Shown here piece after piece: positions 5,934 through 64,000 of a stretch of DNA of 64,000 nt. Each line of letters opens with the position of its first letter. Positions within the stretch are counted from its first letter, which is position 1. Source of the DNA: Podarcis filfolensis (Eukaryota); assembly GCA_964270895.1 (NCBI GenBank), contig OZ185441.1. One strand, written 5' to 3'. Under the pieces are notes generated by a model. That model saw nothing but the letters and a program-made list of their open reading frames with translations, ran no database searches and was not told the DNA's origin. Both the position numbers and the translations under genes were made by a program.

Positions 5934-6095
5934 TATATGTAACTTGTAAGAAATTTAGTGGAGTTTCTTTTTTTTCACATCTTCATGCAGTGGAACCTTA
6001 CAAAGAGATGCAATTCAGAAGCCACAGATGCTCTTTTTGTGGTTCCTATTCTTCTTATTTCTCTTCTCTCCCCCCCCGAACATTCAGATTTCACA

Positions 6096-6263
6096 ATGAC
6101 CACCCTCAGTGAGGCAAATGCTAAGTTTGCCCTAGACTTTTACCGCCAGGTGGTCCATGAGCACCCATGCGAAAATGTCCTGTTTTCTCCTGCGAATCTC
6201 ACAGCAGCAGTTGGCCTGCTCCTCTATGCCTCTGGTTGTGATACAGCAGCTCATTTGGAAAAG
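6096..6263 (+). CDS. Gene A exon 2 (first coding exon)
   Basis: Acceptor CAG| at 6087, ATG 6096, MTTLSEANAKFALDFY...HLEK, donor GTAGGT; 168 bp. Confidence 0.93.
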
Positions 6264-9200: not shown

Positions 9201-12200
9201 ATATATAGGGTGTCACTGGGGATGGGGTCCAGGGGGGCTCAATAAAGTTCCTAAGGAGCAAAAGTGGGGAGGTTGACCTGTATCTCCCTGTCGCATTCAT
9301 CAATTCTTCCATACTCTCAAAGAAAAGCACCCATGTGTATGCTTGTTTGAAAGAATCCTTATTTAGGGGAAAGAACAATATCTCCTCTGTAAGGATTTGG
9401 GTTCACATTTTATCTTTCCCACAATTAATGAACTAACTAGTATTGTCTCATTGTTTACTTCCATGACTGAAGTTCTCTTACAATTCCATTCCAGATACTT
9501 CACTGGGATGAACTTAAAGAGTGTGCCGCTCCAGTACGGAGAAGATATTTCAGGACAAGAAGAAGCTATGGTCGCTTGGAAGACAGACTAAGAACTCCTT
9601 TATATTTTCGTACCTCTCCAACAGTGGTATTTCTTTATTTAACTTTCTTGTATTTTGCTTGAATTAGACCAGTAGCTAAAAGTATTCAGTAGTTTGGGAA
9701 ACAAGCAATGCATAGTCAATTGACTAACAATTATATAATTGTTTTAATGAACTTTTTGCTGCTGTTTGCTTTTATTTATATGCTATTGTGGTAGATATAG
9801 TGATTGCAATGTTTATTGTTTTTAATGCTATTGTGATTATTGCGAGTCTCTTTGAGCTAAACCGGTTGATGGAAAAGCAGTATACAAATATTATATCAAA
9901 TATAGGGGAGAAGGGAATGTTGCCAGTTTAGTTGGGGGTAAAATCACACGCAACAGAGGGTTAGGACTGTGGATACATCTGAGGAGCTGGGGATGTGCAG
10001 ACAGCCTACAGTCAGGAAAACCGAAGGCAATAGATCGAGAAAGAGATATTTAAAAGAAAAGTGGATGCAGAAAAAGCAAAGGGCACAGAAGAAAGGGAAC
10101 TGTGCAAGAAGAGGTTGACCAGAGAACGAAGTTCTCTACAACTTTACAAGAAGATAAGGATGGGGATGTTCTGCTATGTGGGAAAGGAAAATGGAAAGAT
10201 AAGCAGACAGTGGCAGGAAAAGCTATGGTGCTGTTGAAATCTGTAAGTTGCGGGTTCACACATTTCAGAAGTTATTCATCTGGTTTATGGAGGGCAGTGA
10301 CAGGGGTTGGGCGAACATGCTCTTCTCCACTCTCTCTCAAACAATTCCAATTGTGTGTGTTGGGGTGGAGCATGCATTAATTAGAATGTGTCAAGGGGTC
10401 TATCGAGAAGAGATGATTCTTGTGAAGGGGAGAATGCATCAACTTGCTCTGTGTTTTCTTGGGGAGGGCCTCTGCACACTGCTTAATAGTTTGTTTTCCC
10501 ATACTACATTAAATGGACAGCATTTGACATTCCACTGGACACAGAAGTGCTTTGTTTTCATTTTAGGGCCTTCGCTCTCACGATATTAAAGAGGGGTTGC
10601 GTCTAGGAGCAGCTCCACGTGGCAGTCCTACAGACAGCAGGCAGAGACCCGAATCTCCATGTTGTCCTCCACATGAGGTAATGGACCCAAACTGGGAAAT
10701 GTAAGAGAATTAGTTGAGCTGTAAGAGCTAGTAAGACTTGATATTGTGTGTAGCTTCTAACAGCGTAATCCTAGCATGTTTACTCAGAAGTAGGGATGGA
10801 AGGGTGTGTCATTTTCAGTTCTCCCAGGTTCTCATTTTTCCAATCTTAAATTCAGTTCTCCACATTTCTGCTAAAAATGCATTTTATAGATTAAAAAATC
10901 CTCATAAAAATTCTTCAACATTTTAGTTCAAATTTCTCCTATTAAACACATCTTTGCATGCAGTTTTTTAAGGTTCTTATTTATATTTTCCAAATTTATA
11001 CATTTCATTAGTTTTCCAATCAATTTAACATTTCCAAATTTTGACTTCCCCTCTTTCTGCAGTTGCTTAAATTATCTTTTTAATATCTTCTGCATATCCA
11101 GGTTCAAATAACTTGCTCATTTATTTATCTACTGTAAATATATACACTAAAAAATTCCAGGTTATTACATCAATCCTGCTAATGTTTTTATCTGTTTACA
11201 GTTTATGTGTAAATATTCAGTAAACCATTTCCATTCTTTTATAAAAAGTTTGTTATCTTTGCATGTGGTTTTGACTGATATATTGCATCCTTGCAAGCAA
11301 TTTCTCCTGTTACAATGCATTTATATGCTATATTCACCTATATGTTCATATTTATGCACCGTATCCCCTAATATATGCATTTTTAAAAACACTCTTCATT
11401 GGAGAAATGCATCACAAAATTCAAATAAGTGTGAATTTCAAAGGATGGTTATGAACCCACCAGGTAGCCCTAAGAAAGCGACTCTTTCCCATCAGGAATA
11501 CAGAGTAAACCCTTGCAGGGTTATTTTTACTTTATTTTTAATATCTATTTATAGCCCTTTATAGTTTTGTGGTTTTATTTTATGATTTTGATCATTTGTA
11601 CTTTTTATAATTGTGATAACAAAACAGTTTGTTTTAAGAAGTGCAAAAATAGTATGTGATGTTCTTTGAACACTTAGTGTAGTGGTTAAGAGCAGTGGAC
11701 TTGTAATCTGGTGAACCAGGTTCGATTCCCCACTCCTCCACATGCAGCTGTTGGGTGACCTTGGGCTAGTCACACTTCTCTGAAGTCTCTCAGCCTCACT
11801 CACCTCACAGAGTGCTTGTTGTGGGGGGATGAAGGGAAAGGAGATTGTTAGCTGCTTTGAGACTCCTTAGGGTAGTGATAAAACGGGATATCAAATCCAA
11901 ACTCTTCTTCTTCTTGACAAAATGCTGAGTATTAGTACTATTATACGTGGAAAATTGGAGAAACATGCAGCACAGGTTTTAATAAAGAATGAGTGATTCC
12001 AGGTCTCCTGTATAGTAGCCCCTTCAATATGTTCTATGGGTGGAAGTCAACCACATTTTACTGAGAGCAGACCCATTGAAATTAATGAGAAAGACTATTA
12101 GGTCCTTAAATGTCAGTAAGTATACTCTGAGTAAAACTTAGTTGAATACCAACCTTTGTAATAGACTCTGTAGAGAAACATCCAAAGCAGTTGAAGATGT

Positions 12201-15200
12201 TAATCACGTAACTCTAATTGTGAAGAGATTGGGAACAATTAACTATGTGCCCTGGACATGATTGACACATACATGGGCATCCTTTGATTTCTAATTCCTT
12301 AGTTACTCTCCACAATATGTGTGAACTGGCTCCATTGACACATAGGAATAAGTTACATTTAGGGCTCAGTCACATGTGCAATTAATCAAGCGATGAACAC
12401 ACAGAGCTCAGATGTTTAGATGTATGATATAATGACATTAGTTTTGTTCCTTGAAGGTGCCTGATTATGAGTGTGAGAAACCCGCAGCAGTCCACACTGC
12501 TTTCCACAGAATCCTTGCAGAACTCAATAAGTCCAGCACCAACTATGAGCTGAGCTTTGCCAACCGGCTCTACGGAGACCAGTCCATTGCTTTTCTTCAG
12601 GTAATTTCTGGACGGTTCATTATGCGGTCCAACTTTCAAAGAGTAGTGTCATATCTCCAAAACAGTTTGGTACAAATGCTTTACCTGGTTTGCTATTATT
12701 CAAAACTTGGATAAATTGATAATGCTTGTTGTTAGCTGCTTAATTCTAGACACAGAGAGACAGAACTTTCAGTAATGTGTTAAATAATTATTCCTGTTTT
12801 CATACAGAAATTCCTGTACTGTGCTCTGAAACTGTACTTGACTGAGGTGGATGGAGCTGACATTCACTATGCCCCAGAAGAAGTCCGGAGGCTGATAAAC
12901 CTTTGGGCTGAAGTCCAGACACATGGTATTATTATGAAGTGGGGTTTTTTTTGGGGGGGGGGAGGAGTAAGCTGTATGCCTGCAAGACCCTTCTCATTCC
13001 TGGATCCAGCAAGTGTTAACATCTAAGCAAGGATTCAAACTTATGGAATAGCTAGGCTAGCTTCCTAGTAATAGCCAAAGTAAAGGTAATAGCCAAAGTA
13101 AAGGTAAAGGTAAAGGTAAAGGGACCCCTGACTGTTAGGTCCAGTCGCGGACGACTCTGGGGTTGTGGCACTCATCTCGCTTTATTGGTTGAGGGAGCTG
13201 GCGTACAGCTTCCGGGTCATGTGGCCAGCATGACTAAGCCACTTCTGGTGAACCAGAGCAGCACATGAAAATGCTGTTTACCTTCCTGCTGGAGCGGTAC
13301 CTATTTATCTACTTGCACTTTGACGTACTTTTGAACTGCTGGGTGGGCAGGAGCAGGGACCGAGCAACGGGAGCTCTGGAATAACTTGTGATCTGATGCC
13401 ATCCCTTTGAAGCTAAGTGTATTAGCACACACTACAGTTAATGTAGCAGCAGCCATTTGCTTAGTTAGTATACTTTGTATATTAGCAATAAAAAGAAATT
13501 CAAGTTTGCAGGTTTTATTTCCCTTAAGCAAATAAAGGATTGCCTCTTCCTGAAGACATTAATGTTTCCCGCAATCCCATTTGTATATGGCTGGGCATGA
13601 TATCTTTTCCAGACTGAAACCTTCCTTTAATTATTAATGGGTCCATATACCTAAAGATCCAGAAGCCTTCTCGTATTTAATATTTATGTAGCGCCATCAA
13701 CGTGCAGGACACTTTACAGGGTGACGTAAGCAAATAGATAGATCCTTGCCTCAAAGAGGTCACAGTGCAAGGTCACATCCTTATTCAACTAAATGGTTGT
13801 GCCAGCAGAAGCCAGCACAATGCTTCCTGTGATGCAATAGGACTTTCCCTCTCTCCTCCCCACCATGTGCCCTTGTGTCCTTTCCAAATCTCCTTTAAAT
13901 CTGCAATATGCTTAAATGTATGGTATGGATGTGATCCCAATGTAAATATCTGTGAAGGAGACAACAGACATGGGTGACTCATCCTTGGTAACAAGGGATG
14001 GATGTGAGTCTTCCTTCCTGTACTACAAATAAACTACAGAAGGCCTTACCCCCAACATTGTTTTAAAGGTAAAATCCAGGATCTTCTCCCGAAGGACAGC
14101 TTTGATTGTCTCGCTCAACTTCTGCACGTGAACACTCTCTACTTTAAAGGGCAATGGGATGTGAAATTTGACAAAGAACTCACCAGAGTAGATAGATTCT
14201 ACTTGACTGAGGTAAGTTCCAGAAATATACCTGTTCCAGAAATATACCTAGAGGTTTGTATTTCCTTATGCTCTAAATGTTTTCAGAGCAAGAAGAGGAC
14301 TCTAAGAAATAGTGTCTATGTGGCACCATTGCTGGTTTCAGGTACTTTTCAAAGGTTACTAAAGCTCTGTTGGAACAACGGGGTCTTTATGAGCTACACA
14401 GGAATAATGCAACATAAACCACTCAACCTGGTTTCAAAGAAGATTCAACCACCACTTTCCTTGTTGATCATATGAGTTGGGAAGGAGAATATAAAACTGG
14501 TTCTGTATTGTTTTCTGAGATTTTCTAGCTCTGCAGAATTCTTTTGTTTTTAAACAAGAGAACGAGTGAACAAAGGAGGGTGCAAGAACATTAAAATTCC
14601 CTTGTTTCTAGACCAACTCATAAGCAGATCTTGGTGGTGAAGACTACAGTGTATTAACCATCCTAGCCCACCATTGTAAAAAGTGCCTGTATCAGCTCAT
14701 AAGCTGCACTCACAGTTTCAGTTTCTGTTGCCAGCAACTCCCTTCTGTATGTCCTTTTTCTCTGTAAGGCTCTTGCAAAATTCTTGTTGGTTGCACAACA
14801 TCTGTGTGGCCTTTTCTTAATAAGTCTGCCTCTGTTGTTTATCTCTAGTACAGGGGTAGCCAACATGGCGCCTTCCAGATTCTGTTCGATTCTTAACTCC
14901 CTGTGACCTCAGGTAGTCAGGGATGATAGGAGTTGTAGTCCACAACATCTGGAGGGGAACACTGGTTCTTTTCCACATTACTCAAATCTCCATTGCTTCT
15001 GTACATGAAGTTTACATGTTTAGTCATGATGGCTAAAAGCCACAGGTAGACCTATCTTCCATGATATTGGACCACTTCTTTTAAAACACCATATAAAATA
15101 GTGACTGTCCTATCATTGTGTGACAATGATGTCTGTGACTTTAGTAAAGTGGTATATGAATAAATATTTAAGAAATTTCTTCTGATCCTACTGCAAATCA

Positions 15201-18200
15201 ATTTAATTGGATGGGTCTATGTCAGGCTTCCTCAACCTTGGCCCTCCAGATGTTTTTGGCCTACAACTCCCATGATCCCTAGCTAGCAGGACCAGTGGTC
15301 AGGGATGATGGTAATTGTAGTCTCAAAAACATCTGGAGGGCCGATGTTGAGGAAGCCTGGTCTATGTTCTAAAAGAGTAGTTCCTGAGCTTTTTCTCCCA
15401 CAGACCACTTGAAAATTGCAGAGAGTATTGATTTTTCTGCCTGTTGTATCTATTGTATTGGTCTGTGCATAAACATTTCAGTTGTTGTTTTTCCTCACCC
15501 CACCCAACTAAACTAAGAACAAGAACATGCATAGGGAGACCCGTAAATTGTTGCTTGTGATTATAAGTTATAATGTGACTGGTGTTTTGAAATTTTCATG
15601 GGTGCCCATGATTTGAATTTGAATTTGTCAGCATCTTGAGCCAAACAGGTGTTTTGAAACTCTAAAAGGATTTCCGCGTGTCTGAATTGGTAAGCTTGAA
15701 TATGTCATTTCAGAGTTTTCTGCAGATCAGTTACTGACAAAAACAAAACTAATCCACAGAGCACAAAGATGAGTTGACTTTCTGTTTTCCTTCATATTTC
15801 TCACAGGACGTTTGCACAAATGTACAGCTGATGTACCGGAAGGGCCAGTATAATATCGGCACAATTGAGGGATGTGATGTGCAGATGCTTGAGATTCCCT
15901 ACAGAAACAATGAGCTGAGTTTGTTCATATTGCTGCCCAGAGACTGCGACCCTGAATCTCTTCAACAGGTAACATTCTGATGATTCCTCCCCCTTTGCAT
16001 AGGGCTGACATCTCCTTTACAAACAGGTTCTGAAACTGAAGTTGCTTGTAGCACTGACAAAACCAAAAAGCAAAGCCCCTCATTTTTGTGCCAGGCTTGG
16101 CAATCCAGAGGATCCCTATTGCTTGCCAGCTGTAGGGCTTGTTGTTGTCTTCCCCTGTTGTTGTCCACACCTGAAGAGGGCTCTGGGGCCTGAGCACACA
16201 CATTCGTTATAGCTCACTAAGCCAGGTCACAGTTTATGGTTCAAGTTTGAGAGTTAGGAAGATAGGTCGGCATCAGTGAAGTGCTTCTGCTAGTGCAAGG
16301 ACCTCTGTTTCTGCAACTGAACTTCTCCTCCCTCTCCTCCTTTGTGCAATCCAAAGTCCTTGCAACTGTGCAACTGTGCAATCCAAAGTCCTTGCCAACT
16401 GTGGTGATCACACAGGGTCCCCGGACGTTTGACGGTCTATTGATCCCTGTGCCACCACTGTGATTGCCTCTTCGCTGCCACCAACCCGTTTCTCTCGGGT
16501 ACACACGGAGTCCAGACAGTTGTTAACATTAACAAATAATCAAGTTTATTTTATAGGCATGAACAAGCTTATGGTTTCAGTTATTTTTTCTTGGCAGTTT
16601 CTTAATCTTAGTTTCTTTTACTGTCCTATACATTCCTAACAACTTCAAACTGATTATCCCAACTATCTATCTGACTCCACCTAACAATTCCTCTCACTCT
16701 CTCACAACACAACTCAACCAACCCACAGACTTATCCTCCCTCTTTCTTCTCCAACCCCCAACTCTCAACTGACTTCTAACTCTAAGTCCTCCTATCAGTT
16801 TCTCTCTGACCAATCACATCACACTCATTTAACTCTTTCCTTATGAGCCACCTAGGAGGCAAACGCCACACCAACCTATGTTTCTAACTCTCAAACCCTT
16901 GTAAAACTGCCTTCAACCAGGCCAGGTGATTTATCCAGCATTGCCCACTCAAGCGTGGCAGTGTTTCAAATGCATCATATACTATACAGTGGTACCTCAG
17001 GTTAAGTACTTAATTCGTTCCGGAGGTCCGTACTTAACCTGAAACTGTTCTTAACCTGAAGCACCACTTTAGCTAGTGGGGCCTTCTGCTGCTGCCGAGC
17101 CGCCGGAGCACAATTTCTGTTCTCATCTTGAAGCACTATTTCTGGGTTAGCGGAGTCTGTAACCTGAAGCGTATGTAACCCGAGGTACCACTGTACTGGA
17201 GAGCTTCTACACTCAAAGGGCAAGCTCTATCACTGAGCTGTGGTCACTGAGTTCCTGTTACACATTTCCTACACTTCCAACTGCAGTCAGTGTGAACCCT
17301 CCCAAGCTGGCTGCTGCTCGGTTATCAAATTCTTTTACTTTTGCCACCCTCCGACTGCAGTACCTCTGCTGTGCCACCCCTGCTCCCAACTGCATTACAT
17401 AGTCTCTCTTCTGGACCAATTTAGCTGTGGTCTGAGGTAAATGGACCCAGCACAACCAGGGAATCGCAAACTGGTCCCACCAACTTTGAGACTCTAGAAA
17501 TGTGTCACAAGGCACCATTTGACTGTTTATAAATTTCAACCTTGTATGAGCAGCCCCCGCCTGGCTGATGTCATGTCATGTTACAAATTATGCATGCGTT
17601 GAATCTCAAATGTCAGTATGACATTTTTGAAACCACTGAAAAATAATTGGGGGTATGATGTGCTAGAAAAATATTATTGTGTCAATGTTTGTTGCCAAAT
17701 TTATGTCATGCGGTTATTTGCGTGGACAGGCGGAGTCCCCCAAACCCTGGGCACCCCCCCATGTGGAATAACGACTCAAGACAACGTGCTATGGGATTAA
17801 ATTGGCCACAACTTTATTATATTACAGATGTGGGTAGACCTGGGCTCAGGCATTGGGCGTTATCCCTCCCCAGTCCCCAGCTGAGGATCTAGAAAACATC
17901 AGGGTTATCCAGTGTGTGTGGGGGGGATGGGCCAGCTCTGGAGAACATATGTTCAAGCAGAGATAGCCGCCCCCGTTACGCCGCCGTCACAGGGGAGAGC
18001 AATGACGACCTCTCGGCGTACGGTCAAAGACTCCCCTCAGAAACCCCTTTAATAGGGAACTCTGGTATCGCCGCTGCAAAGAGGAAGGGGGTGTGGGTCA
18101 CCGCTGCACGCCCCTCCCATTCAGGAAGATAGACTAAGGGATTCCGCCCAAGGCTTGATACCGCCACCCGAGACCGCACAGTTGCAGTCTACACCTGAAA

Positions 18201-18884
18201 AGACCCTTCATCATCCGCCAACCAATCCGACAGGCCATGCCTGATGTCACTCAGCCAACGCTCATTACCAAGGCTCGATAGGTGCCCACCACCGGGCCTG
18301 AATAGCTCCTTCATGTATACTTTAATGCTGGGATGCTTCACGACCCGACCTCCCATGCACGTGGTTGCCGAGCGCAACGCCCTATTGACTTTTTCAATAG
18401 CGTAGTTAAGTCTGGTGGATTTGATGTTAATCTGGTTTCTTTTATTGATCAGTGTATCAATCACATCACTGTCATTTCTTTGCACCTCCAGCTGGAAGAT
18501 GGACTTAGCTACGAGCAACTGCTCAACTGGTCCTGCATTCTGAAGCCAGAAGAAGTTGAGGTGGTTATCCCGAAATTCAGCTTAGAAAAGAGCATCGAAG
18601 TTAATGCATACTTAGACCTGTCACCTCTGACTGATCCCGAGAAAGCAGATTTATCTGGCGCAACCACAACAGAAGGTGTGGCTCTGACTCAGCTTGTCCA
18701 CGATACTTTCATCGAGATTGATGAGGAGGGCGGTGAAGAAGCAGAGGCCCCCGCATGCCCAAGGGATAGGCGCCCACGTCAGGAACCAAAGGCATTCCTG
18801 GCTAACCATCCTTTCTTGTATTTTGTCCTGCACAAATGCACCCAAAGCCTTATTGCCTTTGGTAAATTTGCTAGACCAGAATAA
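6096..18884 (+). CDS. Serpin gene A: clade B (ov-serpin) family, predicted non-inhibitory, about 456 aa, 8 coding exons
   Basis: Coding exons 6096-6263, 9495-9626, 10567-10677, 12457-12600, 12808-12925, 14069-14211, 15807-15968, 18492-18884; all GT-AG and in frame. Serpin motifs NVLFSP, SFANRLY, INLW..QT.GKI.DLL, VNTLYFKGQW, LEIPY, IPKFSLE, FLANHPFLYF..FGKFARPE. The 168/118/143-bp exons match ovalbumin-type gene structure; no signal peptide. Confidence 0.9.
6632..6780 (+). mobile_element. tRNA-Lys-derived SINE with CR1-type tail
   Basis: GATAGCTCAGTTGGTAGAGCATGAGACTCTT head; TTCCAACTCTACAATTCTATGATTCTAT tail. Confidence 0.7.
7030..7232 (+). mobile_element. Degenerate tRNA-derived SINE
   Basis: GCTAAGTGGTAGAGTACATG head; GATGGAC...AAGGCATCTTCCTACATTCCT tail. 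Confidence 0.55.
7586..8591 (-). mobile_element. L1/Tx1-like LINE internal RT fragment in gene A intron 2
   Basis: ORF 7600-8580 with GTRQGCPISPLLF and AFADDL; 18-bp TSD AGAAAG(G/A)TCTAACTCTTT at 7568-7585 and 8592-8609; same family as 33410-35988. Confidence 0.92.
9495..9626 (+). CDS. Gene A exon 3a (end of helix C and Arg-rich CD loop)
   Basis: ttccattccag|ATA CTT CAC TGG: ILHWDELKECAAPVRRRYFRTRRSYGRLEDRLRTPLYFRTSPTV, homologous to VLHWDEVKEC in genes C/D; donor GTATTT is weaker, so the 3' end is less certain. Confidence 0.8.
10567..10677 (+). CDS. Gene A exon 3b (extra CD-loop exon)
   Basis: tttgttttcattttag|GGC...GAG|gtaatg, 111 bp, phase 0-0, GLRSHDIKEGLRLGAAPRGSPTDSRQRPESPCCPPHE; its end resembles PEPRCPRR of exon 3b in C/D. 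Confidence 0.7.
10793..11445. repeat. Unclassified AT-rich interspersed repeat; related pieces near 1570-1720, 41470-41590, 45345-45640, 52040-52445, 60465-60790
   Basis: Recurring blocks such as GGAGAACTAAATTTAAGATT and AATTTGCACTAAAATGCT seen on both strands; boundaries approximate. Confidence 0.55.
11676..11915 (+). mobile_element. Squam3-like SINE
   Basis: Same consensus, (CTT)n tail. Confidence 0.8.
12457..12600 (+). CDS. Gene A exon 4
   Basis: VPDYECEKPAAVHTAFHRILAELNKSSTNYELSFANRLYGDQSIAFLQ; AG/GT boundaries; 144 bp. Confidence 0.92.
12808..12925 (+). CDS. Gene A exon 5
   Basis: KFLYCALKLYLTEVDGADIHYAPEEVRRLINLWAEVQTHG; 118 bp, phase 0-1. Confidence 0.93.
13095..13376 (-). mobile_element. 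Sauria SINE, 5'-truncated
   Basis: (AAAGGT)n tail and reverse-complement body. Confidence 0.8.
14069..14211 (+). CDS. Gene A exon 6
   Basis: KIQDLLPKDSFDCLAQLLHVNTLYFKGQWDVKFDKELTRVDRFYLTE; 143 bp, phase 1-0. Confidence 0.93.
15223..15359. mobile_element. hAT-type MITE
   Basis: TIR CAGGCTTCCTCAAC, perfect 8-bp TSD GTCTATGT. Confidence 0.85.
15807..15968 (+). CDS. Gene A exon 7
   Basis: DVCTNVQLMYRKGQYNIGTIEGCDVQMLEIPYRNNELSLFILLPRDCDPESLQQ; 162 bp. Confidence 0.92.
16400..16870 (-). mobile_element. Solo LTR in gene A intron 7
   Basis: TG...CA termini, 5-bp TSD CCAAC; second copy at 51441-51925; AATAAA on the minus strand. Confidence 0.8.
16987..17193. mobile_element. Tc1/mariner-type MITE
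   Basis: TA|CAGTGGTACCTC...GAGGTACCACTG|TA. Confidence 0.88.
17704..18395. mobile_element. CpG-rich LTR-like insertion, boundaries uncertain
   Basis: Starts TGTCA, CpG-rich, TTTATT motif; absent from the 188-bp intron 7 of gene C; no TSD found. Confidence 0.4.
18492..18884 (+). CDS. Gene A exon 8 (RCL and C-terminus)
   Basis: LEDGLSYEQLLNW...IDEEGGEEAEAPACPRDRRPRQEPKAFLANHPFLYFVLHKCTQSLIAFGKFARPE*; 393 bp. Confidence 0.93.
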   Translation: MEDGLSYEQLLNWSCILKPEEVEVVIPKFSLEKSIEVNAYLDLSPLTDPEKADLSGATTTEGVALTQLVHDTFIEIDEEGGEEAEAPACPRDRRPRQEPKAFLANHPFLYFVLHKCTQSLIAFGKFARPE

Positions 18885-25396: not shown

Positions 25397-26440
25397 AGTA
25401 CAATTCTTATCAGCCCCATCCAGCAAGGCTAATGGTCAGGGGTGATGTAATCCAACAATATGGAGGGCCACAGGTTCTCCATTGCTCCTTTATAATGATG
25501 AGATTAGCTAGGATTTTTGCACAGGAATTACAGCTACCCATTTTGAGTTTCAAGTCGAAGTAATGACTTTTTTGGGGAAAGTGAGTCCCTATTTGTAAGG
25601 ATACACATCTTTCCCTTTTTCTTTTTTTAAACAACCCTGTTCATGAGCATAGTTCCCTCCTCAGCCTTTGCACCAATTTTTATTCCAATTACTACATCTT
25701 TTTCTTTTTCTTTTTCAGTTAATTATATGGGTTTAACTCAGACAGTTAGAAACCATGTATTTAAGGGCTAATGTCAAGATGTTACATGGACACTGTTAAA
25801 ATTGTTCATGAAAAGCACCTCCCATTTCAGCTCAGCCCTAGTGGAAATTACACAGAGATTTCCCTCCCTTCAACTGGAAGATTGACAGCTATTTTGTGTT
25901 TGTTGTTCAGTCTGTGATATGAGAATACAAATGCTTAGTTCATCATATACAGACGCTGTTTGTGAGAAAACAAACCATACCTTTTGCTTGTCATACTCTG
26001 AAAGGAGGAGGCTGAAAAAACTAGACTTGGAGAATTCATTTTTTTTAAAAAAATTGTTCTACTGCTGTTTTTCCAGGGCTGAAGGATTTCGCAATGACTT
26101 CCCTCAGTGAAGCAAATGCTAAGTTTGCCACTGACTTCTTCCATCTGCTGAGAAAAGAACCCATGTGGAAATATCCTGTTTTCTCCAGTTAATCTCTCCA
26201 CTGCCCTTCACCTGCTGCTTTACGGATCACGGCATGATACCAAAGCTGAAATTGAAAAGGTAGGATGCATATTTATTTCCCAGTCTTTCTCTAACATCAT
26301 GAGAAGCCAGTAAGAGAAACCGAGAGGACATGAGTTACCAAAGTCACCTTATGAATTTCATACCCATGCAGAGATTTGGACCCTGGTTTCCTCACATGAG
26401 TGGATGAAGCTGCCTGTTATATTGGTCCATCTAGTCTAGA

Positions 26441-33409: not shown

Positions 33410-35988
33410 CAGATCATGGAGGGGAAGAGGGCACCGGAAACGTGGAAAGAAGCATTCATCACATTGATACCCAAGCTAGAATCTGAAAAGACCCAGCTTA
33501 AGAACTACCGTCCCATCTCACTCCTGAATGTGGATTACAAAATATTTGCAGATATTTTAGCAAGTAGACTTAAAAAGGTCTTAAATGAAGTAATTCACAA
33601 GGACCAAGCTGGCTTTCTCCCTGGTAGACATTTATATGGAAATACCAGAAACATCATTGACATTTTGGAACTATTGCAAACCAATAGGAACACAAGGGCG
33701 GTTTTAATCTTCATTGATGCGGAGAAAGCATTTGATAATATATCTTGGAAGTTTATGAAGAAAAATTTGGAAGGGATGGGAGTGGGACGGGGGTTTGAAA
33801 ATGGAATAGAAGCAATCTATTCAGAACAGAAAGCTAAATTAATAGTGAACAATGTGGTGACGGAGGAATTTAAAATTGAAAAAGGGACACGACAAGGGTG
33901 CCCTCTATCCCCTCTTTTATTCATTTCAGTCCTGGAGGTGCTATTGAACATGATTAGGGAGGACCGGTTGGTACAAGGGATAGAGGTCGGAGTGAAACAA
34001 TATAAACTGAAAGCTTTTGCAGATGACTTAGTTTTGACATTACAGGAGCCAGAACCCAGTACAAAAAGAGTTTTAGAACTTATTCATGAGTTTGGTCGGG
34101 TTGCAGGATTTAAGTTGAACAAACAAAAGACTAAGGTTTTGGCCAAAAACTTGACATCTACAGAAACAGAGGGGTTTCAGAGAGAAACAGAATTAAATGT
34201 GGTTAAAAAGGTGAAATACCTAGGGATTTATTTGTCTTCCAAAAATTTGAACTTATTTAAAGACAATTATGAAAAATGTTGGTCGGAAATTAAGAAGGAC
34301 TTAGAAATTTGGTCAAGATTAAAACTTTCCTTGTTGGGTCGAATAGCAGCTATAAAAATGAATGTATTGCCGAAAATGTTATTTTTGTTTCAGACCCTAC
34401 AGATCGTGGACAGAGTGGAATGTTTTGGAAAATGGCAGAAGGATATATCTGGGTTTGTCTGGCAGGGCAAAAAGCCTCGAATAAAGTTTAAAATACTAAC
34501 TGACTCGAAAGAAAGAGGAGGGTTTGCCCTGCCGGACTTGAGGTTATATTATGAATCTGCAGCCTTCTGCTGGTTGAAAGATTGGTTTTTGTTAGAAAAC
34601 ACTGATGTCCTGGATCTGGAAGGGTTTGATAATGCTTTTGGTTGGCATGCATATCTATGGTACGACAAGGTTAAGGTTCATAAACTGTTCAAAAATCATA
34701 TTGTCAGAAAATCAATTTTTGCAGTCTGGATGAAATATAAGGACTTATTAGAGAGTAAAACCCCGAGGTGGCTATCACCAGTGGAGGCCAAGGCTCGAAA
34801 AAGACCCAATATGGAGGCCTATTGGCCGAAATATTGGGAAATAATTGAAAAAATTGGAGACAACTGGAAACTGCAGAGTCAGGATAAACTAAAAAATAAG
34901 GTGCGAGATTGGTTACACTATGCTCAAATTCAAGAGGTTTTTAAATTGGATAAAAAAGTTGGTTTCCAAGTGGAAAAATCGAAATTGGAGACAGAATTGC
35001 TAGAACCAAAAACTAAGGTATTATCGAGAATGTATAACTTGCTGCTTAAGTGGAATACACAGGATGAGACAGTTAAATCTGCCATGATAAAATGGGCACA
35101 GGATGTCGGACATAACATTATGTTTGAAGACTGGGAAAGGTTATGGAACAACGGGATAAAATTCACGGCATGTAGTGCCCTGAAAGAAAATATTATGAAA
35201 ATGTTATACCGGTGGTACATGACCCCAGTCAAACTAGCTAAGATATATCACCTATCTGATAACAAATGTTGGAAATGTAAGGAGGCAGAAGGGACATTTT
35301 TTCATCTCTGGTGGACCTGCCCAAAAGTGAAGGCCTTCTGGGAAATGATTTACAATGAACTGAAAAAGGTATTTAAGTATACCTTTCCCAAGAAACCAGA
35401 GGCCTTCCTGCTGGGCATGGTAGACCAGAAAGTGTCAAAGAAAGATAGAACTTTGTTTATGTATGCTACCACAGCAGCAAGAATACTCATCGCAAAGAAT
35501 TGGAAGACACAAGATTTACCCACGTTGGAGGAATGGCAGACGCAGTTGATGGACTATATGGAACTAGCTGAAATGACCGGCAGAATCCGAGATTTGGATG
35601 AAGAATCAGTCGAGGCGGATTGGAAAAAATTTAAAGACTATTTGCAAAAATACTATAAGCTGTATGAACTTTAAGACAGTGCATGTTTTTGGAAAGGTTA
35701 CGCTTTAGCAAATATGATTAAGCAAATGGTAAAATTAATGACAAATGAGAAAAGAAGTCAATGTGAATCAAACATTTTATGTTTATTTTAAAAGGTAACA
35801 AAGTTAAGATACAATATACTGAATATGGGTACATAATAATGGAAAGTTCCAACAAGGTTTGAAATAAGGTAACAAATTGCTGATATTGCTACTACAAAGA
35901 ACGCAGATCTGGAAGGTGTGGGGAAGTCCAATGGTTTTCTTTTTTGTTAAAAAAATCAAAAATTGTTTCTTGTAAAAAAAAAAAAAAA
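33410..35988 (+). mobile_element. Young 5'-truncated L1/Tx1-like LINE (RT and C-terminal Cys-rich domain)
   Basis: Uninterrupted 752-codon ORF 33416-35674 (NYRPISLLNVDYKIF, GTRQGCPLSP, FADDL, CWKC...HLWWTC); A-tail 35974-35991; 19-bp TSD AAATAATAAGTAAAAATGC (33391-33409 and 35989-36007). Confidence 0.96.
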
Positions 35989-44200: not shown

Positions 44201-44601
44201 TGTTTCTCAGTAAGTGAAGTGGTGGCGTGATGAAGGGAATAAGAAAGCAGTCCTCAGCATTTCCTGGTTATAGGAGCATCCATTCTTTTACTGGAGTCTC
44301 TTGGGAGAAAATACTGGTTTTAAGGGATAGTTTCGAGAGTCATTATCAGGAGTGCTTTGGACACTCTGCCAATACATGGAGATCTTCAGTGCTGAAAGGG
44401 CATGTCATAATCCATCTGCTGCTTGCAGTAGATGAAGTGCACATAATTATACAAACTCATATCTGAAGCATATGTGGCAATCCATGATAATTAGGTCTGA
44501 TTATTATAAATGTCCAGTTTTTGCACCGCACTGTTTTTATTATGTAAATTTGGTTTAATGAAATGGTTGCAGGTTTAGAACTTCAGGCTTGTTTAATGGT
44601 T

Positions 44602-44698
44602 GTGGGGGTGTGAGATGATCAGTATAAATACCAGCGTCTCACAGGAGGAGAGCATCACACTCACCTGCCAGACTCCTATCATCACAGCTGAAGCCAAG
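44602..44698 (+). promoter_or_regulatory. Core promoter and non-coding exon 1 of serpin gene C
   Basis: GTGGGGGTGT 44602-44611, TATAAA 44623-44628, donor AAG|GTAAGC after 44698. Confidence 0.8.
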
Positions 44699-44911
44699 GT
44701 AAGCAGCTCTCCTTTCAAGCATCCATGCAGCCTTGTGTTGGGTGATGTGCATCTTTACAGCAGTTCTTTTATCATGAGTAGTTCTTCAAAATTGTGGGTT
44801 TGGTGATAGAATGTATTGCAGTGCAGAAGTAGGAACAAGTATATCTGTATTCTGAAGGATCCTGAAATGATGAGCTGTTTTGGTCTTCCCTCAGAGCTTT
44901 TGAATTCCATC

Positions 44912-45079
44912 ATGACCACCCTGCCTGAAGCCAATGCTAAATTTGGAGTCGACTTTTTCAAAGTGTTGACCACTGAGCACCCATGCGACAACCTCGTGTT
45001 CTCCCCTGCGAACCTCACCGCAGGCCTGGGCCTACTCGCTTATGCATCTGGTTGTGAACAAGCAGATCAGATTGAGAAG
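44912..45079 (+). CDS. Gene C exon 2
   Basis: MTTLPEANAKFGVDFFKVLTTEHPCDNLVFSPANL...QIEK; 168 bp. Confidence 0.93.
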
Positions 45080-48000
45080 GTGGGTCTAATCAAGCAGTAG
45101 AGATGCAGCCTTCAGACTGGGCTCATCATTAGCAGATACCTTTCCATCACCGGTCATATTTGATACAAGTTGAGAAATGATCTCACTGTGGCTTGATCCA
45201 GTAATAAGCCCAGTCAACGTCTCTGCACAAAATCCCATAAATGTGCAGAGATCAAAGAATATTGCATCACTAGGCATGGAGTAGAAATTTGGTTGAATGG
45301 AATGGAAATCTTCCAAATTTGTAGTTTTCAAAACAATGTATGAGCCAAAAACAGCTCTTTTTTAATAGATTTGTACTTACCTGTACTTATTTTGTAAAAG
45401 TAATATTTACAAAAAATCATATATTAGGGGGAAATGTGCATAAAAATGAAGATATTAGTGAAAGTAGCATAACACATGCATTATACTGGGGAAATTACTT
45501 GCAGAAATGTGTACATTAGTAAAAGAAAATGCATCTAAAAATGGGTTTATTAGGAGAATTTCACACTAAAATGCTTGTGATTAAAAAAATAGCAAACTGT
45601 TGGAGAACTAAATTTAAGATTCGATTCCTTCAGGTCTCATCCTATATGAGATTTGTTGCTATCATCTCAAGGCAGAACCATAGATTGCCTAAAGTTTGTT
45701 TCAAAGATTAGTATGCAGGAAGATATCCATCCTGCCAATGTCACATATGATCTAAGAGTCATGTGAATCGTCCCTAATATACATATCAGGATAATAGGTG
45801 CTGCTGTTATAATATTGCCTGTGCAACTGAAGCAATGTTCCAATTTCATTCAAGGTCCTGCATTGGGATGAAGTGAAAGAGTGTGACAAACCCAGAAGCA
45901 GGAGCCTGGGACATTCAACAACCAGACTAAGAAGGGTATGTAGAAGAACGCTTGGATAAAGGTGTATTCCTCCCCTGCCCATAGAACCCAGCTTGCATAT
46001 TAGTATTATCTCCTGTTATCTCAACATCAAATCCATGCCTGTTGGGAAGAAACATATCTGAAGGAAGAACAGAGGCAGCGAGCAGTCAATCAATGAAAGC
46101 GCAAATGTCACTTTCACAAATACATTTGAAACAAAATTTTCAGATGTGAAGTTAACTGCCCCTCCTTAAGTTGAATGGGGAATACAGCCTGCAATTATTT
46201 GTGGTATATTTGTGGCTTCTCATTTGTGGTATCAGTGCAACATTGGGAAAACTATAGAGTTCTATGAGTCTACTTATGGATACGTACATTTTGTAACTTC
46301 ATTGCAGGCACAAGAAAAAGTTGAAACCTGCCCCAGACCAAGACCGCGTCCTGAGCCAACCAAGCCTGAAGCAACTCGCCCCAGACCAAGACCCCGTCCT
46401 GAGCCAACCAAGCCTGAACCAACTTGCCCCAGACCAAGACCCCGTCCTGAGCCAACCAGGCCTGAGCCAACTTGCCCCAAACCAAGACCCCGCCCTGAAC
46501 CAGAGCAACCTAAACCTTGTGACAAGAGACGAGTCATTCACCGCCCAGCTCCTTGCCCTGAGCCCGAGCCCGAGCCCGAGCCACGTTGTCCTAGACGCGT
46601 AAGTTGTGAAACATCTGGAGAGTTTCATCTAGATGATTTTTTCTTTATTTTTTATTTAAAATTTAGGGGGCTGTCTCTAAGCATTCTACATGGTACACAC
46701 AACTTGTGATAAAATCGACAGGAAAGTAGGAATGAAACCGCTAAATTCTTGCTTAGATGTGAAGTTCACTGGGTGATGTTGAGTCAGTCACCATCAACCC
46801 CCATCTAACGTTGCTGTGAGCATAAAATTGAGTAAATCACAAGAAAGGTGTGCTGGGCTGCCTGCAGGGATTCAGATGTGATAAACGTTTACTTCAGAGT
46901 AGGCATTCCTGAGTTCAGTATAACTTTCAAGCATTCCTGCCTGAGATAAGGGTATAGATTTTCTTTCTCACAAGACAAACCCTTAAGAAGCAGCCAGGTG
47001 TCATGAGAATTAACCTTCTATTTTGAATCCTTAGGATGTTCCCTGCTACGAGTGTGAGGAGCCTGAAGGCATCCATACAGCATTCAGCAAAATCCTTGCG
47101 ACTCTTAATGAGCCCAGCAGCAACTATACCCTGAGCTTTGCCAACAAACTCTATGGAAACAATGACATTGCCTTCATCCAGGTAATGCTAATTTTGGCTC
47201 CTATGGGTGCTTCACTGTACTGTGAGAACCAAGTGCACATTGCAACCTGCAATTGACTGTATTCTACATAAATGGGCTCATCATCTACTGGTGTCTGTCA
47301 AAGCTGTGCCTCATTCCCAGGCCATCAGAGGAAATGATAACAATTACTTGCTCTACAAAGTGCTTTACCTACAAAATCCAGTGATGGTGGTGGTGGTTGC
47401 TGTTGCTTTTATTATTATTATGTATTATATTTATACCCCACTCATTGGGAGGAATTGGGAGGAACTGAATTTCTGAGGGCATTAGGCAGCAATTGGAAAA
47501 TTCCCAAATGAGAAAGGTGATTATGGATAATATATGGATCCAATGTTTTCTTGTTCTGTTCAGAAATTCCTTTACTGTGCTCTGAAACTGTACTTGACTG
47601 AAGTGGAGAACGCTGATCTGCATAATGCCCCAGAGGAAGTAAGGAGACTCATCAACCTTTGGGTCGAAGTCCAGACACATGGTAAGACCACAGCACACTC
47701 CAATGACTTCTTGATATAACTTTCATGACAGGGAGGTCATGATTTTTATTCTGCAAACTAGGAACCAATTAAATCTTACTGAACCGACAATCAGTTAAGA
47801 GCCCATTGTGGAATAGCCTCTACTCTCTTCCAAACCAGAGGAAAGGTCAGATTATCAAAACAAATGAAACTGGTGCCCATAATATTTTGTTTATTAAAAC
47901 ATTTAAATACCTCCATTCGGCTGCAAAGGACCACTCAGGGTATAATTAAGTACTTCATCTATCAAGTTGCTTAATTTATCTTCTATAAATAGTGAGTTAG

Positions 48001-48658
48001 AAGTTTTATGCTAACTCATACAGTGTAATATTATAACTAAAATCTGAATATATATATTTTTTATTTTTAAGAAAACCTACTATATCCATTTCTTTCCCAG
48101 GTAAGATCAAGGACCTTCTCCCCAAGGACAGCTTTGACTGCCTTGTTCAGCTCCTGCTGGTGAATGCTCTCTACTTCAAAGGACAATGGGAAGTGAAATT
48201 TGACAAAGAGCTCACAGAAGAAGCTCCCTTTTACCCTCATCATGCAGATGAGGTGAGTTAGAAACATATTCCTAGCTTCCTTGCTTCTTTTGTGCAGAGA
48301 CAATGTACCTTGTAACTTCCAGAATACACGTTTAGTGTTGGAGTTGAGTTGCCCCAATGAGGTCTTGATGGAGGTCACTTGAAACACTTGGTGCAAGGAA
48401 GGCTCTGCAATGCTGGACGGTCATCACCCCTTTTAGTTGAAGATGATGGCCCAAAACTAGAGTTAGCTGTCCTAGAGCCCCACTGCTAACAATGGGGTTT
48501 AATTTGGCCACTTGATACCAGTCCAATTGATTTCAATTTAGTAGGATTGTTGCTGAAATTACAAAAGAGAATAATCTGCTGTCTCCCTTTTCTTTTTCTC
48601 TGGGAGGTGTTTTTTGTTTTGTTTTTTTTGTTTTGCAATGCCGAATCTCATGCTGTCA

Positions 48659-48690
<32 letters not shown>

Positions 48691-49505
48691 ACTTCCCAAA
48701 GAAAACTAAGTTCCTTCTCTCTTTTTAAATATTTCCTTTTTTCCTTTTCTTCACAGAAGGAATGCCACAGCGTGCAGCTGATGCACAGGAAGGGGGTCTA
48801 CAATGCAGGGACAATTGACCTATGCGACGTTCAAGTCCAAGTTGTTGAGATCCCCTACAAGAACAATGAACTGACCTTCGTTCTGCTGCTGCCAGTAGAC
48901 TGCAGTGCAGAAGCTCTTGAACAGGTAAATGGTCTTTCCATTCCTATGATACTGTCCATGGCCTTATTCACCTTATCCATCTCTGGCCCTCAATTTCAAT
49001 AATACTGGTGTGGAAAAAGTCTGCTGATATATTTTTCTTATTGTATTCACCCTTGTTTTGATTCAATCTGGGATTGGAATGATATCACTATAACTTCTAT
49101 GTGTTCCTCTAGCTGGAAGATGGACTTAGCCACGAGCATCTGCTTGACCTGTCCTGTCATCTGAAGGCCATTGAGGTGGATTTGGCCATTCCCAAGTTCA
49201 GCTCAGAGAAGAGCATTGAAGCCAACGAATACCTGAATCTGCCGGATCTGACTGACCACGAAAAGTCCGATTTCTCTGGAGCAACCACAACAGAAGGCGT
49301 GGCTCTGACTCAGCTGGTCCATGATGCTGCTATCGAGATTGATGAGGAGGGTGGTGAAGAACCAGAGCCAGTCCCTTGCCCCAAAGATAGGCGTCCACGT
49401 CGGGAACCTGTGGAGATTCGGGCTGACCGTCCTTTCCTCTATTTCGTCCAGCACAATTGCACCCAGAGCATCATTGCTCTCGGTAGATTTGCTAAGCCAG
49501 AATAA
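44912..49505 (+). CDS. Serpin gene C: clade B serpin with Pro/Arg/Cys repeat CD loop, predicted non-inhibitory, about 505 aa
   Basis: Coding exons 44912-45079, 45855-45935, 46308-46598, 47035-47181, 47564-47681, 48101-48252, 48757-48924, 49113-49505; all GT-AG, continuous frame, serpin core motifs as in gene A. Confidence 0.92.
45855..45935 (+). CDS. Gene C exon 3a
   Basis: caag|GTC...AGG|gtatgt; VLHWDEVKECDKPRSRSLGHSTTRLRR; 81 bp. Confidence 0.88.
46308..46598 (+). CDS. Gene C exon 3b (repeat-containing CD-loop exon)
   Basis: ttcattgcag|GCA...CGC|gtaagt; 291 bp, 97 aa, AQEKVETCPRPRPRPEPTKPE...PEPRCPRR. Confidence 0.88.
46326..46517 (+). repeat. Coding tandem repeat, 4 x 48 bp (T[C/R]P[R/K]PRPRPEP.[K/R/Q]P..)
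   Basis: Four in-frame 16-codon units are directly visible. Confidence 0.93.
47035..47181 (+). CDS. Gene C exon 4
   Basis: DVPCYECEEPEGIHTAFSKILATLNEPSSNYTLSFANKLYGNNDIAFIQ; 147 bp. Confidence 0.93.
47564..47681 (+). CDS. Gene C exon 5
   Basis: KFLYCALKLYLTEVENADLHNAPEEVRRLINLWVEVQTHG; 118 bp. Confidence 0.93.
48101..48252 (+). CDS. Gene C exon 6
   Basis: KIKDLLPKDSFDCLVQLLLVNALYFKGQWEVKFDKELTEEAPFYPHHADE; 152 bp (3 codons longer than gene A). Confidence 0.93.
48757..48924 (+). CDS. Gene C exon 7
   Basis: KECHSVQLMHRKGVYNAGTIDLCDVQVQVVEIPYKNNELTFVLLLPVDCSAEALEQ; 168 bp. Confidence 0.93.
49113..49505 (+). CDS. Gene C exon 8 (RCL and C-terminus)
   Basis: LEDGLSHEHLLDL...IDEEGGEEPEPVPCPKDRRPRREPVEIRADRPFLYF...LGRFAKPE*; 393 bp. 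Confidence 0.93.
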   Translation: MEDGLSHEHLLDLSCHLKAIEVDLAIPKFSSEKSIEANEYLNLPDLTDHEKSDFSGATTTEGVALTQLVHDAAIEIDEEGGEEPEPVPCPKDRRPRREPVEIRADRPFLYFVQHNCTQSIIALGRFAKPE

Positions 49506-50760: not shown

Positions 50761-50990
50761 AGTGTGGTGTAGTGGTTAAGAGCAGTGGACTTGTAATCTG
50801 GTGAACCGGGTTCGATTCCCTGCTCCTCCACATGCAGCTGCTGGGTGACCTTGGGCTAGTCACACTTCTCTGAAGTCTCTCAGCCCCACTCACCTCACAG
50901 AGTGTTTGTTGTGGGGGAGGAAGGGAAAGGAGATTGTTAGCTGCTTTGAGACTCCTTAGGGTAGTGATAAAGTGGGATATCAAATCCAAA
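50761..50990 (+). mobile_element. Squam3-like SINE
   Basis: Same consensus; tail missing. Confidence 0.8.
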
Positions 50991-52621: not shown

Positions 52622-53264
52622 TAGAAGAAGGAACATTTTGTCATATGTGGTGGGAATGTAAAAAGGTGAAAAGCTTCTGGGAGATGATATATAATGAGAT
52701 GGAAAAAATGTTGAAATATACATTTATAAAGAAACCAGAAGCATTCTTACTGGGCACTGTAGGAAGTGATATAAATAGAAAGGACTGTAAGTTGTTTTTA
52801 TATGCAACAACGGCAGCAAGATTGTTATTGGCCCAAAAATGGAAGCAAGAAGAACTACCGACGAAAGAAGAATGGAGGATGAAATTAATGGACTATGCAG
52901 AATTGGATAAACTAACAGGAAGGATTCGAAACCGTCGGAACCAGAAATTCACAGAAGACTGGAGTAAATTTACAGACTATTTGAAAAGTATTTGTGATGA
53001 TCAGAGTATGCTTGTAGGTCTGCAAGTAGTTTTGTGAGGAGTATTATTGGAATTATTGCAAAAATGGATAAGGGGAAGGATGGTTAGTTAAAACAATTAA
53101 AGGCAATATGAATTTAAGAAATGCATAAAAGGTGGTCAAAATGGTGGATCATAAGAGGTGCTGATGGAAGTCCAAAAAAAAAAAAAAAAGATTATATAAG
53201 TGATGAAGTTCTGTGGTATGTATTGTAATTTATATGCTAAAATTAATAAAAATTATTATATTAA
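52622..53264 (+). mobile_element. L1/Tx1-like LINE 3' fragment
   Basis: EEGTFCHMWWECKKVKSFW...TTAARLLLAQKWK; AATAAA 53245-53250; 15-bp TSD AAAGTATCCATTTCC (52607-52621 and 53265-53279). Confidence 0.9.
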
Positions 53265-58844: not shown

Positions 58845-59100
58845 GCCAGTGTGGTGTAGTGGTTAAGAGCGATAGACTCGTAATCTGGGGAACCGGGTTC
58901 GCGTCTCTGCTCCTCCACATGCAGCTGCTGGGTGACCTTGGGCTAGTCACACTTCTTTGAAGTCTCTCAGCCCCACTCACCTCACAGAGTGTTTGTTGTG
59001 GGGGAGGAAGGGAAAGGAGAATGTTAGTCGCTTTGAGACTCCTTAAAGGGAGTGAAAGGCGGGATATCAAATCCAAACTCTTCTTCTTCTTCTCTTCTTC
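58845..59100 (+). mobile_element. Squam3-like SINE
   Basis: Same consensus, (CTT)n tail. Confidence 0.8.
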
Positions 59101-59709
59101 AAAAACAACAGCTTTCCTCTGCCACTCACGCTCAGCATCTTGAATTGTATTTGGAACTATAGTGCCTTTGGACTCGGACATTTCATTGAGCCATTTTGAC
59201 TGATAGAAACATTTTTCCCAATCTATTTTTTAAAACATCTAATCGAGTGATCCTCACCATTTCCTCCAGTGGTGAATTCATACCCACTGTCCTGCTGTGT
59301 CATTTTCAATTTCTTACACATTTTTTTCAAAGCCCATGTAGGGTGGTGTGGGGAATAAGAAAGGAGCCCTCTGCCTTTCCTGGCTCTAGGGACACACATT
59401 CTTTCAATGGAGTCTCTTGGGGGGGAAACTTGGTTTTAAGGGACAGTTTCAAGGGGATATTTGGAGTGCTTTGGGACACACTGACAATACACCAATGCTG
59501 ACAGGGTGTGTCACATTGTGCCTGCACTTTGCACTAGATGAAGTATACATAATTAAGCAAAGTCATATAGGGAGTATATGTGGCAACCCAAGATAATTAC
59601 CTCTGATCATTAGAAATGTCCAGTTTTTGCATCGTACTGGTTTCATTATGTAAATTTGAATTAATCTAATTTTTTGCAGATTCAGAAAATACAAAGTAGT
59701 TTAATGGTT

Positions 59710-59806
59710 GTGGGGGTGTGAGATGATCAGTATAAATACCAGCGTCTCACAGGAGGAGAGCATCACATTCACCTGCCAGACTCCTATCATCACAGCTGAA
59801 GCCAAG
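59710..59806 (+). promoter_or_regulatory. Core promoter and non-coding exon 1 of serpin gene D
   Basis: GTGGGGGTGT 59710-59719, TATAAA 59731-59736, donor after 59806; nearly identical to gene C. Confidence 0.8.
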
Positions 59807-60019
59807 GTAAGCAGCTCTTCTTTCAAGCATCCATGCAGCCTTGTGTTGGGTGATGTGCATCTTTACAGCAGTTCTTTTATCATGGATAGTTCTTCAAAAT
59901 TGTGGGTTTGGTGATAGAATGTATTGCAGTGCAGAAGTAGGAACAAGTATATCTGTATTCTGAAGGATCCTGAAATGATGAGCTGTTTTGGTCTTCCCTC
60001 AGAGCTTTTGAATTCCATC

Positions 60020-63925: not shown

Positions 63926-64000
63926 GTAAATGGTCTTTCCATTCCTATGATACTGTCCATGGCCTTATTCACCTTATCCATCTCTGGCCCTCGATTTCAA

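Follow-up and report, generated by a model that had tools for sequence, protein, structure and literature searches.

Can a clade B serpin (ov-serpin) gene carry one coding exon more than the 7- and 8-exon architectures allow, and if it can, how old is such an exon, where did it come from and what does it do to the protein? All clade B serpin genes known by 2005 had 7 or 8 exons, which an earlier note on this DNA had also taken as its starting point, and an additional exon that codes for the CD loop sets the 8-exon genes apart from the 7-exon ones (Kaiserman & Bird 2005, PMC1308813). Here we analysed a stretch of 64,000 nucleotides from the lizard Podarcis filfolensis (assembly GCA_964270895.1, contig OZ185441.1; hereafter the window), which is free of N and in which clade B serpin genes form a tandem cluster, all on the plus strand. 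In gene A (6.1-18.9 kb) an additional exon, 3b, lies at 10567-10677, between exons 3 and 4. We put at about 0.8 the probability that exon 3b is a real and ancient extra coding exon of a squamate-specific clade B subfamily, and we infer that it is included in the mRNA in this species.

Exon 3b in the window and in other squamates

The earlier note had described two CD-loop introns flanking exon 3b in each of genes A, C (44.9-49.5 kb) and D (60.0 kb to the window end), and direct reading of the sequence bears out its coordinates, reading frames, GT-AG introns and exon lengths of 111, 291 and 126 bp. All three lengths are divisible by 3, and the exons have no in-frame stop, AG/GT flanks and phase 0 at every junction. 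The exon is thus symmetric (phase 0-0) and skipping it would keep the frame, as had been proposed; indeed, database models without exon 3b exist. The exons that encode the CD loop and its surroundings are the following.

9495-9626, plus strand: gene A exon 3, 132 bp, phase 0-0; end of helix C and basic first part of the CD loop; weak donor, GTG/gtattt
10527-10566, plus strand: conserved intron flank upstream of gene A exon 3b; branch-site/pyrimidine-tract region
10567-10677, plus strand: gene A exon 3b, 111 bp, 37 codons, phase 0-0; Cys-Cys-Pro-Pro motif at its end; acceptor ttttag/GGC, donor GAG/gtaatg
12457-12600, plus strand: gene A exon 4, 144 bp, phase 0-0; end of the CD loop, helix D and strand 2A; Pfam Serpin positions 58-98
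45855-45935, plus strand: gene C exon 3, 81 bp, phase 0-0
46308-46598, plus strand: gene C exon 3b, 291 bp, Pro/Arg/Glu/Cys-rich repeat; present in Podarcis muralis models P0166 and P0351
47035-47181, plus strand: gene C exon 4, 147 bp
61062-61142, plus strand: gene D exon 3, 81 bp
61528-61653, plus strand: gene D exon 3b, 126 bp, without most of the repeat array
62104-62250, plus strand: gene D exon 4, 147 bp

The array in gene C exon 3b is a 48-bp tandem repeat of 3.7 copies. Genes C and D belong to a recent segmental duplicate (44227-48999 vs 59343-64000), whose introns are still 80-100% alike, and they are therefore not independent of each other. In gene A, the pattern alone is not beyond chance, since the 2830-bp intron holds 59 candidates made of an AG, an open frame of at least 111 bp in phase 0-0 and a GT, against about 11 in shuffles. 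Among these, the interval 10567-10677 is distinguished solely by the best donor score and a good pyrimidine tract, and the proof has to come from other species. For these comparisons the exons were searched singly, and natural database proteins, rather than joined spliced models of the window genes, served as full-length stand-ins.

In Zootoca, the model XP_034981384.1 (P0171) comprises an exon 3 of 132 bp, an exon 3b of 111 bp and an exon 4 of 144 bp, all in phase 0, with splice sites and sequence nearly identical to those of the window. Between gene A and its Elgaria counterpart only the exons and a few short pieces are alignable, and exon 3b is among them, with 72% identity over 167 nt (E 3e-19); the Elgaria model itself (P0179) has exon 3 and lacks 3b. 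The A-type gene of Lerista has an exon 3b of 102 bp and that of Paroedura one of 132 bp behind an exon 3 of 99 bp; both 3b exons have AG/GT sites, are in phase 0-0 and align to the 3b peptide of the window. Lerista also has an intact exon 3 (L003:11105), which its model missed; exon 3 of gene A is conserved in Zootoca, Elgaria, Lerista and Paroedura. In the C-type gene of Paroedura, exon 3 is 93 bp and exon 3b 219 bp long, again with AG/GT sites and in phase 0-0. Furthermore, a Varanus model (P0182) contains a peptide resembling 3b, and C-type 3b peptides occur in many iguanian, agamid, lacertid, snake and gecko models, with a loop of up to 308 residues in Anolis carolinensis.

The 3b peptides can be aligned from lacertid through to gecko. 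A Cys-Pro motif near the 3' end of the exon, first remarked in the window, is real: its codons, TGTCC, do not vary among eight A- and C-type sequences taken from lacertid, skink, anguid and gecko. The conservation extends into the intron: in five genes whose splits lie at the squamate crown or earlier, ungapped identity in the 40 nt upstream of 3b is 52%, as compared with 35 +/- 8% in non-homologous acceptors. When the window is set against Zootoca, nucleotide identity is 96.2% in exon 3 and 97.3% in exon 3b, vs 91-95% in exons 2, 4, 5 and 8, the others compared; exon 2 is conserved no better than the introns. In DNA contigs from four runs compared with the window, none of the 40 differences listed (there were 117 further ones) falls inside 10567-10677, from which nothing firm follows. 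The extra exon beyond the 8-exon architecture is conserved in other squamates and is not an oddity of this window.

Besides the number of comparable candidates in the intron, several observations weigh against a real exon in gene A. Three differences separate exon 3b of the window from that of Zootoca where seven are expected at the intron rate, which speaks for an exon, but this test of constraint among lacertids reaches only P = 0.08. The ratio of nonsynonymous to synonymous substitution rates (dN/dS), taken over 34-37 codons, comes to 0.4 in the comparison with Elgaria, 0.66 in that with Lerista and about 1 in that with the gecko, weak signs of constraint and too noisy to be decisive. The lacertid models of the gene A orthologue disagree with each other: the newer Zootoca model XP_060134225.1 (P0172) joins exon 2 directly to exon 4, and the Lacerta agilis model P0169 starts with an ATG inside the intron between 3b and 4 (window equivalent 11446-11505) and splices from there to exon 4, although this first exon is probably an annotation stop-gap and not a real first exon. 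The donor of exon 3 is weak, and a search with residues 78-206 of P0171 found no transcript-derived protein fragments spanning exons 3, 3b and 4. Even so, the notion that 10567-10677 is a chance open frame, one of 59 comparable candidates in the same intron, and that models including 3b are annotation artefacts is extremely improbable, since Zootoca, Lerista, Paroedura and Elgaria all show a conserved, in-frame counterpart at the same place that closes with the same motif, and Varanus has a similar peptide.

Age and origin of the exon

With the last exon of gene A as query, only nine representatives fall below E 1e-30, which marks the subfamily as distinct. When the closest full-length match was used for a word search, about 60 relatives were listed, all squamate, and turtle proteins came next at about 41% identity. 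In a tree of serpin bodies the squamate genes form a clade of their own (support of 100 in the Shimodaira-Hasegawa-like approximate likelihood ratio test, SH-aLRT), sister to turtle genes (92), and contain three paralogue clades, A, C and type 3/4, each with both geckos and non-geckos. In the turtle sister gene there is just one CD exon, of 123 bp, which an intron of about 620 bp separates from exon 4, and profiles of 3b found no match at this locus, neither in the exon nor in the intron that follows it. No tuatara protein was among the matches listed in two word searches (in the second, the best 120 of 2618). Since A- and C-type genes of geckos and of other squamates have 3b, the exon predates both the separation of A from C and crown Squamata; the tree likewise places the duplication behind that separation before the crown squamates, so that the layout of eight coding exons, or nine exons if a non-coding first one is presumed, is ancestral to the squamate-only subfamily. 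The survey of other squamates that the earlier note had called for thus finds the exon in Zootoca, Lerista and Paroedura and dates it.

At the end of the single CD exon of turtles (L005:8939-9061 in Natator depressus), the models of two closely related turtle genes are 12 residues apart, which could stem from alternative donor sites.

As to where exon 3b came from, we somewhat favour exon 3, itself symmetric, as the source, by tandem duplication. In 254 kb of sequence we looked for matches to a profile built on the A-type 3b acceptor (45 nt of intron, 30 nt of exon). Behind the members of the profile and their orthologues came C-type 3b acceptors and, at E 0.005-0.13, the acceptors of exon 3 in genes C and D, Lerista A and Paroedura A; the first unrelated match had an E-value of 8.9. 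Around the acceptor, exons 3 and 3b share 45% ungapped identity vs a null of 31.5 +/- 6.9%, the highest of 21 classes of exon pairs, and in gene A, counted by eye, 19 of the first 30 bases of 3b are those of exon 3. The two exons are adjacent, on the same strand and both in phase 0-0 in all loci mapped. Against a duplication, the reverse profile, built from exon 3 DNA, has no match in 3b, so that this origin rests on marginal E-values.

Under the proposed mechanism, exon 3 would have been duplicated in tandem together with its acceptor region, giving 3b, and the copy would have kept the reading frame because exon 3 is symmetric. The extra symmetric exon is housed inside the phase-0 CD-loop intron, with all canonical ov-serpin introns retained. 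Adjacency, a common phase class, and a common acceptor context and first ten codons are what tandem exon duplication, as a general mechanism, would leave. Unlike typical cases, the similarity between exons 3 and 3b is old and marginal, and mutually exclusive use is not indicated, since there are models that include both.

De novo exonisation of 3b from the phase-0 CD-loop intron, with its likeness to exon 3 due to chance or convergence, is unlikely in our view. Such an intron does offer many candidates with an AG, an open frame and a GT, and the failure of the exon-3 profile to find 3b would be expected, but all the best non-self matches of the 3b acceptor profile in the 254 kb are exon-3 or 3b acceptors, and the match of the initial exon bases in gene A would be left to coincidence.

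Less probable still is a true gain, in which a spliceosomal intron was inserted into a long single CD-loop exon. The earlier note had read the second CD-loop intron as a gain; this is doubtful. A new exon placed between the two that were already there accounts better for the extra intron; it is probably a tandem copy of exon 3, in which case no insertion of an intron into coding sequence is needed. A possible unsplit ancestor is the type-4 paralogue of Paroedura picta, whose one CD exon of 117 bp (L008:4021-4137) starts like exon 3 and ends in Ser-Pro-Cys-Pro like 3b. However, type 4 groups with type 3 in the tree and the split form is present in both the A and C clades, so that fusion or loss in type 4 is more economical, and donor profiles of 3b have no match to the type-4 exon. 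Moreover, the resemblance of the acceptor regions includes intron bases, which is not expected from an insertion, and the turtle outgroup offers no uninterrupted colinear exon, the 123-bp exon 3 of the sister gene containing nothing like 3b. The single CD exon of the gecko type-4 gene may instead be a secondary fusion of exons 3 and 3b.

The CD exon of the type-3 paralogue was also considered as a 3b exon and dropped, as the exon-3 profile matches it (L010:3975-4026, E 7.6e-4).

Splicing and the protein product

The exon can be lost. In Elgaria multicarinata (L002:10526-10636), the orthologue of 3b keeps a 111-bp open frame, while the AG of its acceptor is replaced by a (GT)n microsatellite and the GT of its donor has become TT, consistent with the Elgaria model skipping 3b. 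It looks like an exon soon after its death, and as both splice sites were lost, the exon can evidently go without killing the gene, that is, it is dispensable.

Whether 3b is in addition a regulated cassette, one gene making long- and short-loop serpins by its inclusion or skipping, and perhaps by that of exon 3 too, is a real possibility that we place somewhat below an even chance. The symmetry of 3b would let the frame survive skipping. Ungapped identity in the 40 nt upstream is 57% for exon 3, above 3b with its 52% and, for both, above exons 4-8 (34-46%, null 35%), and the downstream flank of 3b is slightly raised as well (41% vs 31%); raised conservation of intron flanks is a usual trait of regulated exons. 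Every combination occurs in models of lacertids, agamids and phrynosomatids (3 and 3b, 3 only, 3b only, neither), and among the C-type models of lacertids and agamids alone all four are annotated. However, the models with and without 3b are of different paralogues or come from different annotation releases, and there is no named isoform pair of one gene among them. One candidate by name, 'isoform X3' of Sceloporus undulatus (P0154, L009:1001-22374), is a chimera of two tandem genes, with exons 2-3 from one paralogue and exons 3b-8 from its neighbour 15 kb downstream; either transcription reads through both genes or the model is chimeric. An Rfam scan of 9400-12700 gave no match.

It is improbable that splicing now passes over exon 3b of lacertid gene A, as it does in Elgaria, leaving the exon a relic and the functional mRNA with 8 exons or fewer. 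Neither exon 3 nor exon 3b is part of the newest Zootoca RefSeq model, the Lacerta agilis model begins downstream of both, the exon 3 donor is weak, and the Elgaria frame, open without splice sites, means that an open frame alone is no proof of use. On the other hand, AG, GT, frame and length are all kept in both the window and Zootoca, exons 3 and 3b are the best conserved of the exons compared between the two, and the skink and gecko orthologues have good splice sites.

In the protein, exon 3b would encode a disordered, Pro/Ser/Arg/Cys-rich extension of the CD loop with a conserved Cys-Pro end, leaving the serpin fold untouched. An AlphaFold model of the Zootoca protein P0171 has a mean predicted local distance difference test score (pLDDT) of 68 and a predicted template modelling score (pTM) of 0.71. 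In this model residues 86-166, which take in the greater part of exon 3, the whole of 3b and the beginning of exon 4, have a pLDDT below 50 and no secondary structure, and helix D starts at residue 169. As the span of 3b is unstructured in the model, the exon is predicted to add length to a floppy loop at the side of the serpin. A fold that 3b does not touch would leave its length free to vary (102 to more than 290 bp), to grow by internal repeats (gene C) or to be lost altogether (Elgaria). In gene A, exon 3 gives the loop a strongly basic part, 3b a Ser/Pro/Arg-rich part with Cys-Cys-Pro-Pro at its end, and the start of exon 4 two further cysteines; a Pfam search with the 3b peptides found no family.

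The serpins of this subfamily are probably non-inhibitory, judging from their hinge. That of gene A reads Glu-Glu-Gly-Gly-Glu-Glu-Ala-Glu-Ala-Pro, of which Gly-Gly-Glu-Glu is common to the subfamily, so that Glu stands at P12 and P10 throughout, where inhibitory serpins have small uncharged residues from P14 to P9. By established serpin rules, charged residues at P12 and P10 argue against inhibitory loop insertion. The reactive loop is rich in Arg and Pro (exon 8: 18492-18884, 49113-49505). By analogy with known CD loops, the loop would most likely serve as an arm for attachment, cross-linking or localisation.

MENT also has a functional CD loop. The CD loop of PAI-2 undergoes transglutaminase cross-linking and carries a cysteine (PMC2693429; PMC2874763), and that of bomapin has a basic nuclear-localisation signal and a redox-active cysteine (PMC2874763). 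As in the lizard genes, the loop of PAI-2 (SERPINB2) is long and mobile, lies between helices C and D, is dispensable to the fold and is an attachment site. It differs in being encoded without an extra exon, whereas the lizard loop is longer, rich in Pro, Cys and Arg, and sits on serpins whose hinge speaks against inhibition. With bomapin (SERPINB10), gene A shares a basic part, here in exon 3, and cysteines, here clustered in 3b and exon 4, a likeness in loop features and not a sequence similarity.

The repeats of C-type 3b exons, with Pro, Glu, Lys/Arg, Cys and short Pro-Glu-Pro units, recall what we take to be the character of small proline-rich and cornified-envelope proteins. Unlike small proline-rich proteins, the 3b peptides have no Pfam match, and the 3b of gene A is not repetitive. 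One could go further and picture the squamate CD loop as a modular arm encoded by its own exons, expandable, optionally included and rich in Pro, Arg and Cys, by which non-inhibitory serpins would be made structural or cross-linkable, for example in cornified epidermis, with arm length set by exon choice and repeat number; we regard this picture, taken as a whole, as a long shot.

The serpin cluster and its place in clade B

Apart from the additional exon, gene A has the structure of a clade B serpin. Its remaining exons are these.

6087-6263, plus strand: gene A exon 2, the first coding exon; ATG at 6096; donor AAG/gtaggt, phase 0; Pfam Serpin positions 1-50
12808-12925, plus strand: gene A exon 5, 118 bp
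14069-14211, plus strand: gene A exon 6, 143 bp, canonical splice sites
15807-15968, plus strand: gene A exon 7, 162 bp
18492-18884, plus strand: gene A exon 8, including the stop; Pfam Serpin positions 237-370, E 9.5e-24; charged hinge residues P12 and P10

Exon 2 probably starts at 6087, judging from an AG behind a long pyrimidine tract, and in Zootoca models an upstream exon is joined to the acceptor that matches this one. The serpin domain PF00079 was matched on three exons of gene A (2, 4 and 8) and one of gene C (8). In gene A, positions 1-50 of the profile correspond to residues 6-55 and the protein ends one residue past the profile end, with neither a signal peptide or other extension at the N-terminus nor an extension at the C-terminus. 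Gene A is intact: every exon is open and has canonical sites, and in comparison with Zootoca dN is about 0.03 and dS about 0.1-0.25.

The intron positions and phases of the canonical 7- and 8-exon genes are kept in the window, Elgaria and Paroedura, with exons of 168, 144-147, 118, 143, 162-168 and 384-390 bp and phases 0, 0, 1, 0 and 0. The 8-exon clade B genes (SERPINB2, B10, B12, chicken ovalbumin and MENT) have these intron positions and phases in common and exons of 168, 144-147, 118, 143, 162-168 and ~390 bp; they likewise have an exon 3 that codes for the CD loop, is variable and precedes a phase-0 intron, lie in a tandem cluster and lack a signal peptide. Unlike them, the lizard genes have one further coding exon between exons 3 and 4. 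Genes A and C and the A- and C-type genes of Zootoca and Paroedura have eight coding exons, presumably nine exons in total once a non-coding first exon is counted, and thus depart from the 7 or 8 exons of clade B.

The closest database proteins to the window genes are lacertid (Podarcis and Zootoca). Gene 'B' consists of an exon-2 remnant only (26073-26271), the two halves of which match in different frames, and a search for further serpin exons between 19 and 44 kb found none besides it. A short interspersed repeat is present at 791-1016, 1735-1988, 11673-11924, 50780-50990 and 58847-59068, one of the copies sitting within the intron between exons 3b and 4 of gene A. It has a very high copy number, with a contig word depth of up to millions in all four runs, and from reading its sequence our guess is that it has a tRNA-like head. 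Two open frames of 120 codons each (35288-35647 and 52627-52986) are 61% identical to each other, have no Pfam match and are possibly repeat-borne open reading frames.

Literature searches turned up no description of a 9-exon ov-serpin, nor of this squamate clade B subfamily; in a femoral-gland proteome paper, SERPINE2 was the only serpin named. The exon itself is already contained in RefSeq and Ensembl models. Lizard annotations do not agree on exons 3 and 3b and would gain from a curated structure.

The conserved gene structure of clade B serpins is a textbook example, and their history has been reconstructed with the help of the difference between 7 and 8 exons. A third, 9-exon architecture fixed in a whole order of reptiles would be a dated step in that history, and it suggests that the CD-loop exon can multiply through duplication of a symmetric exon. 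It also marks a fast-evolving and probably non-inhibitory subfamily, the function of which seems to lie in the loop and not in the reactive centre.

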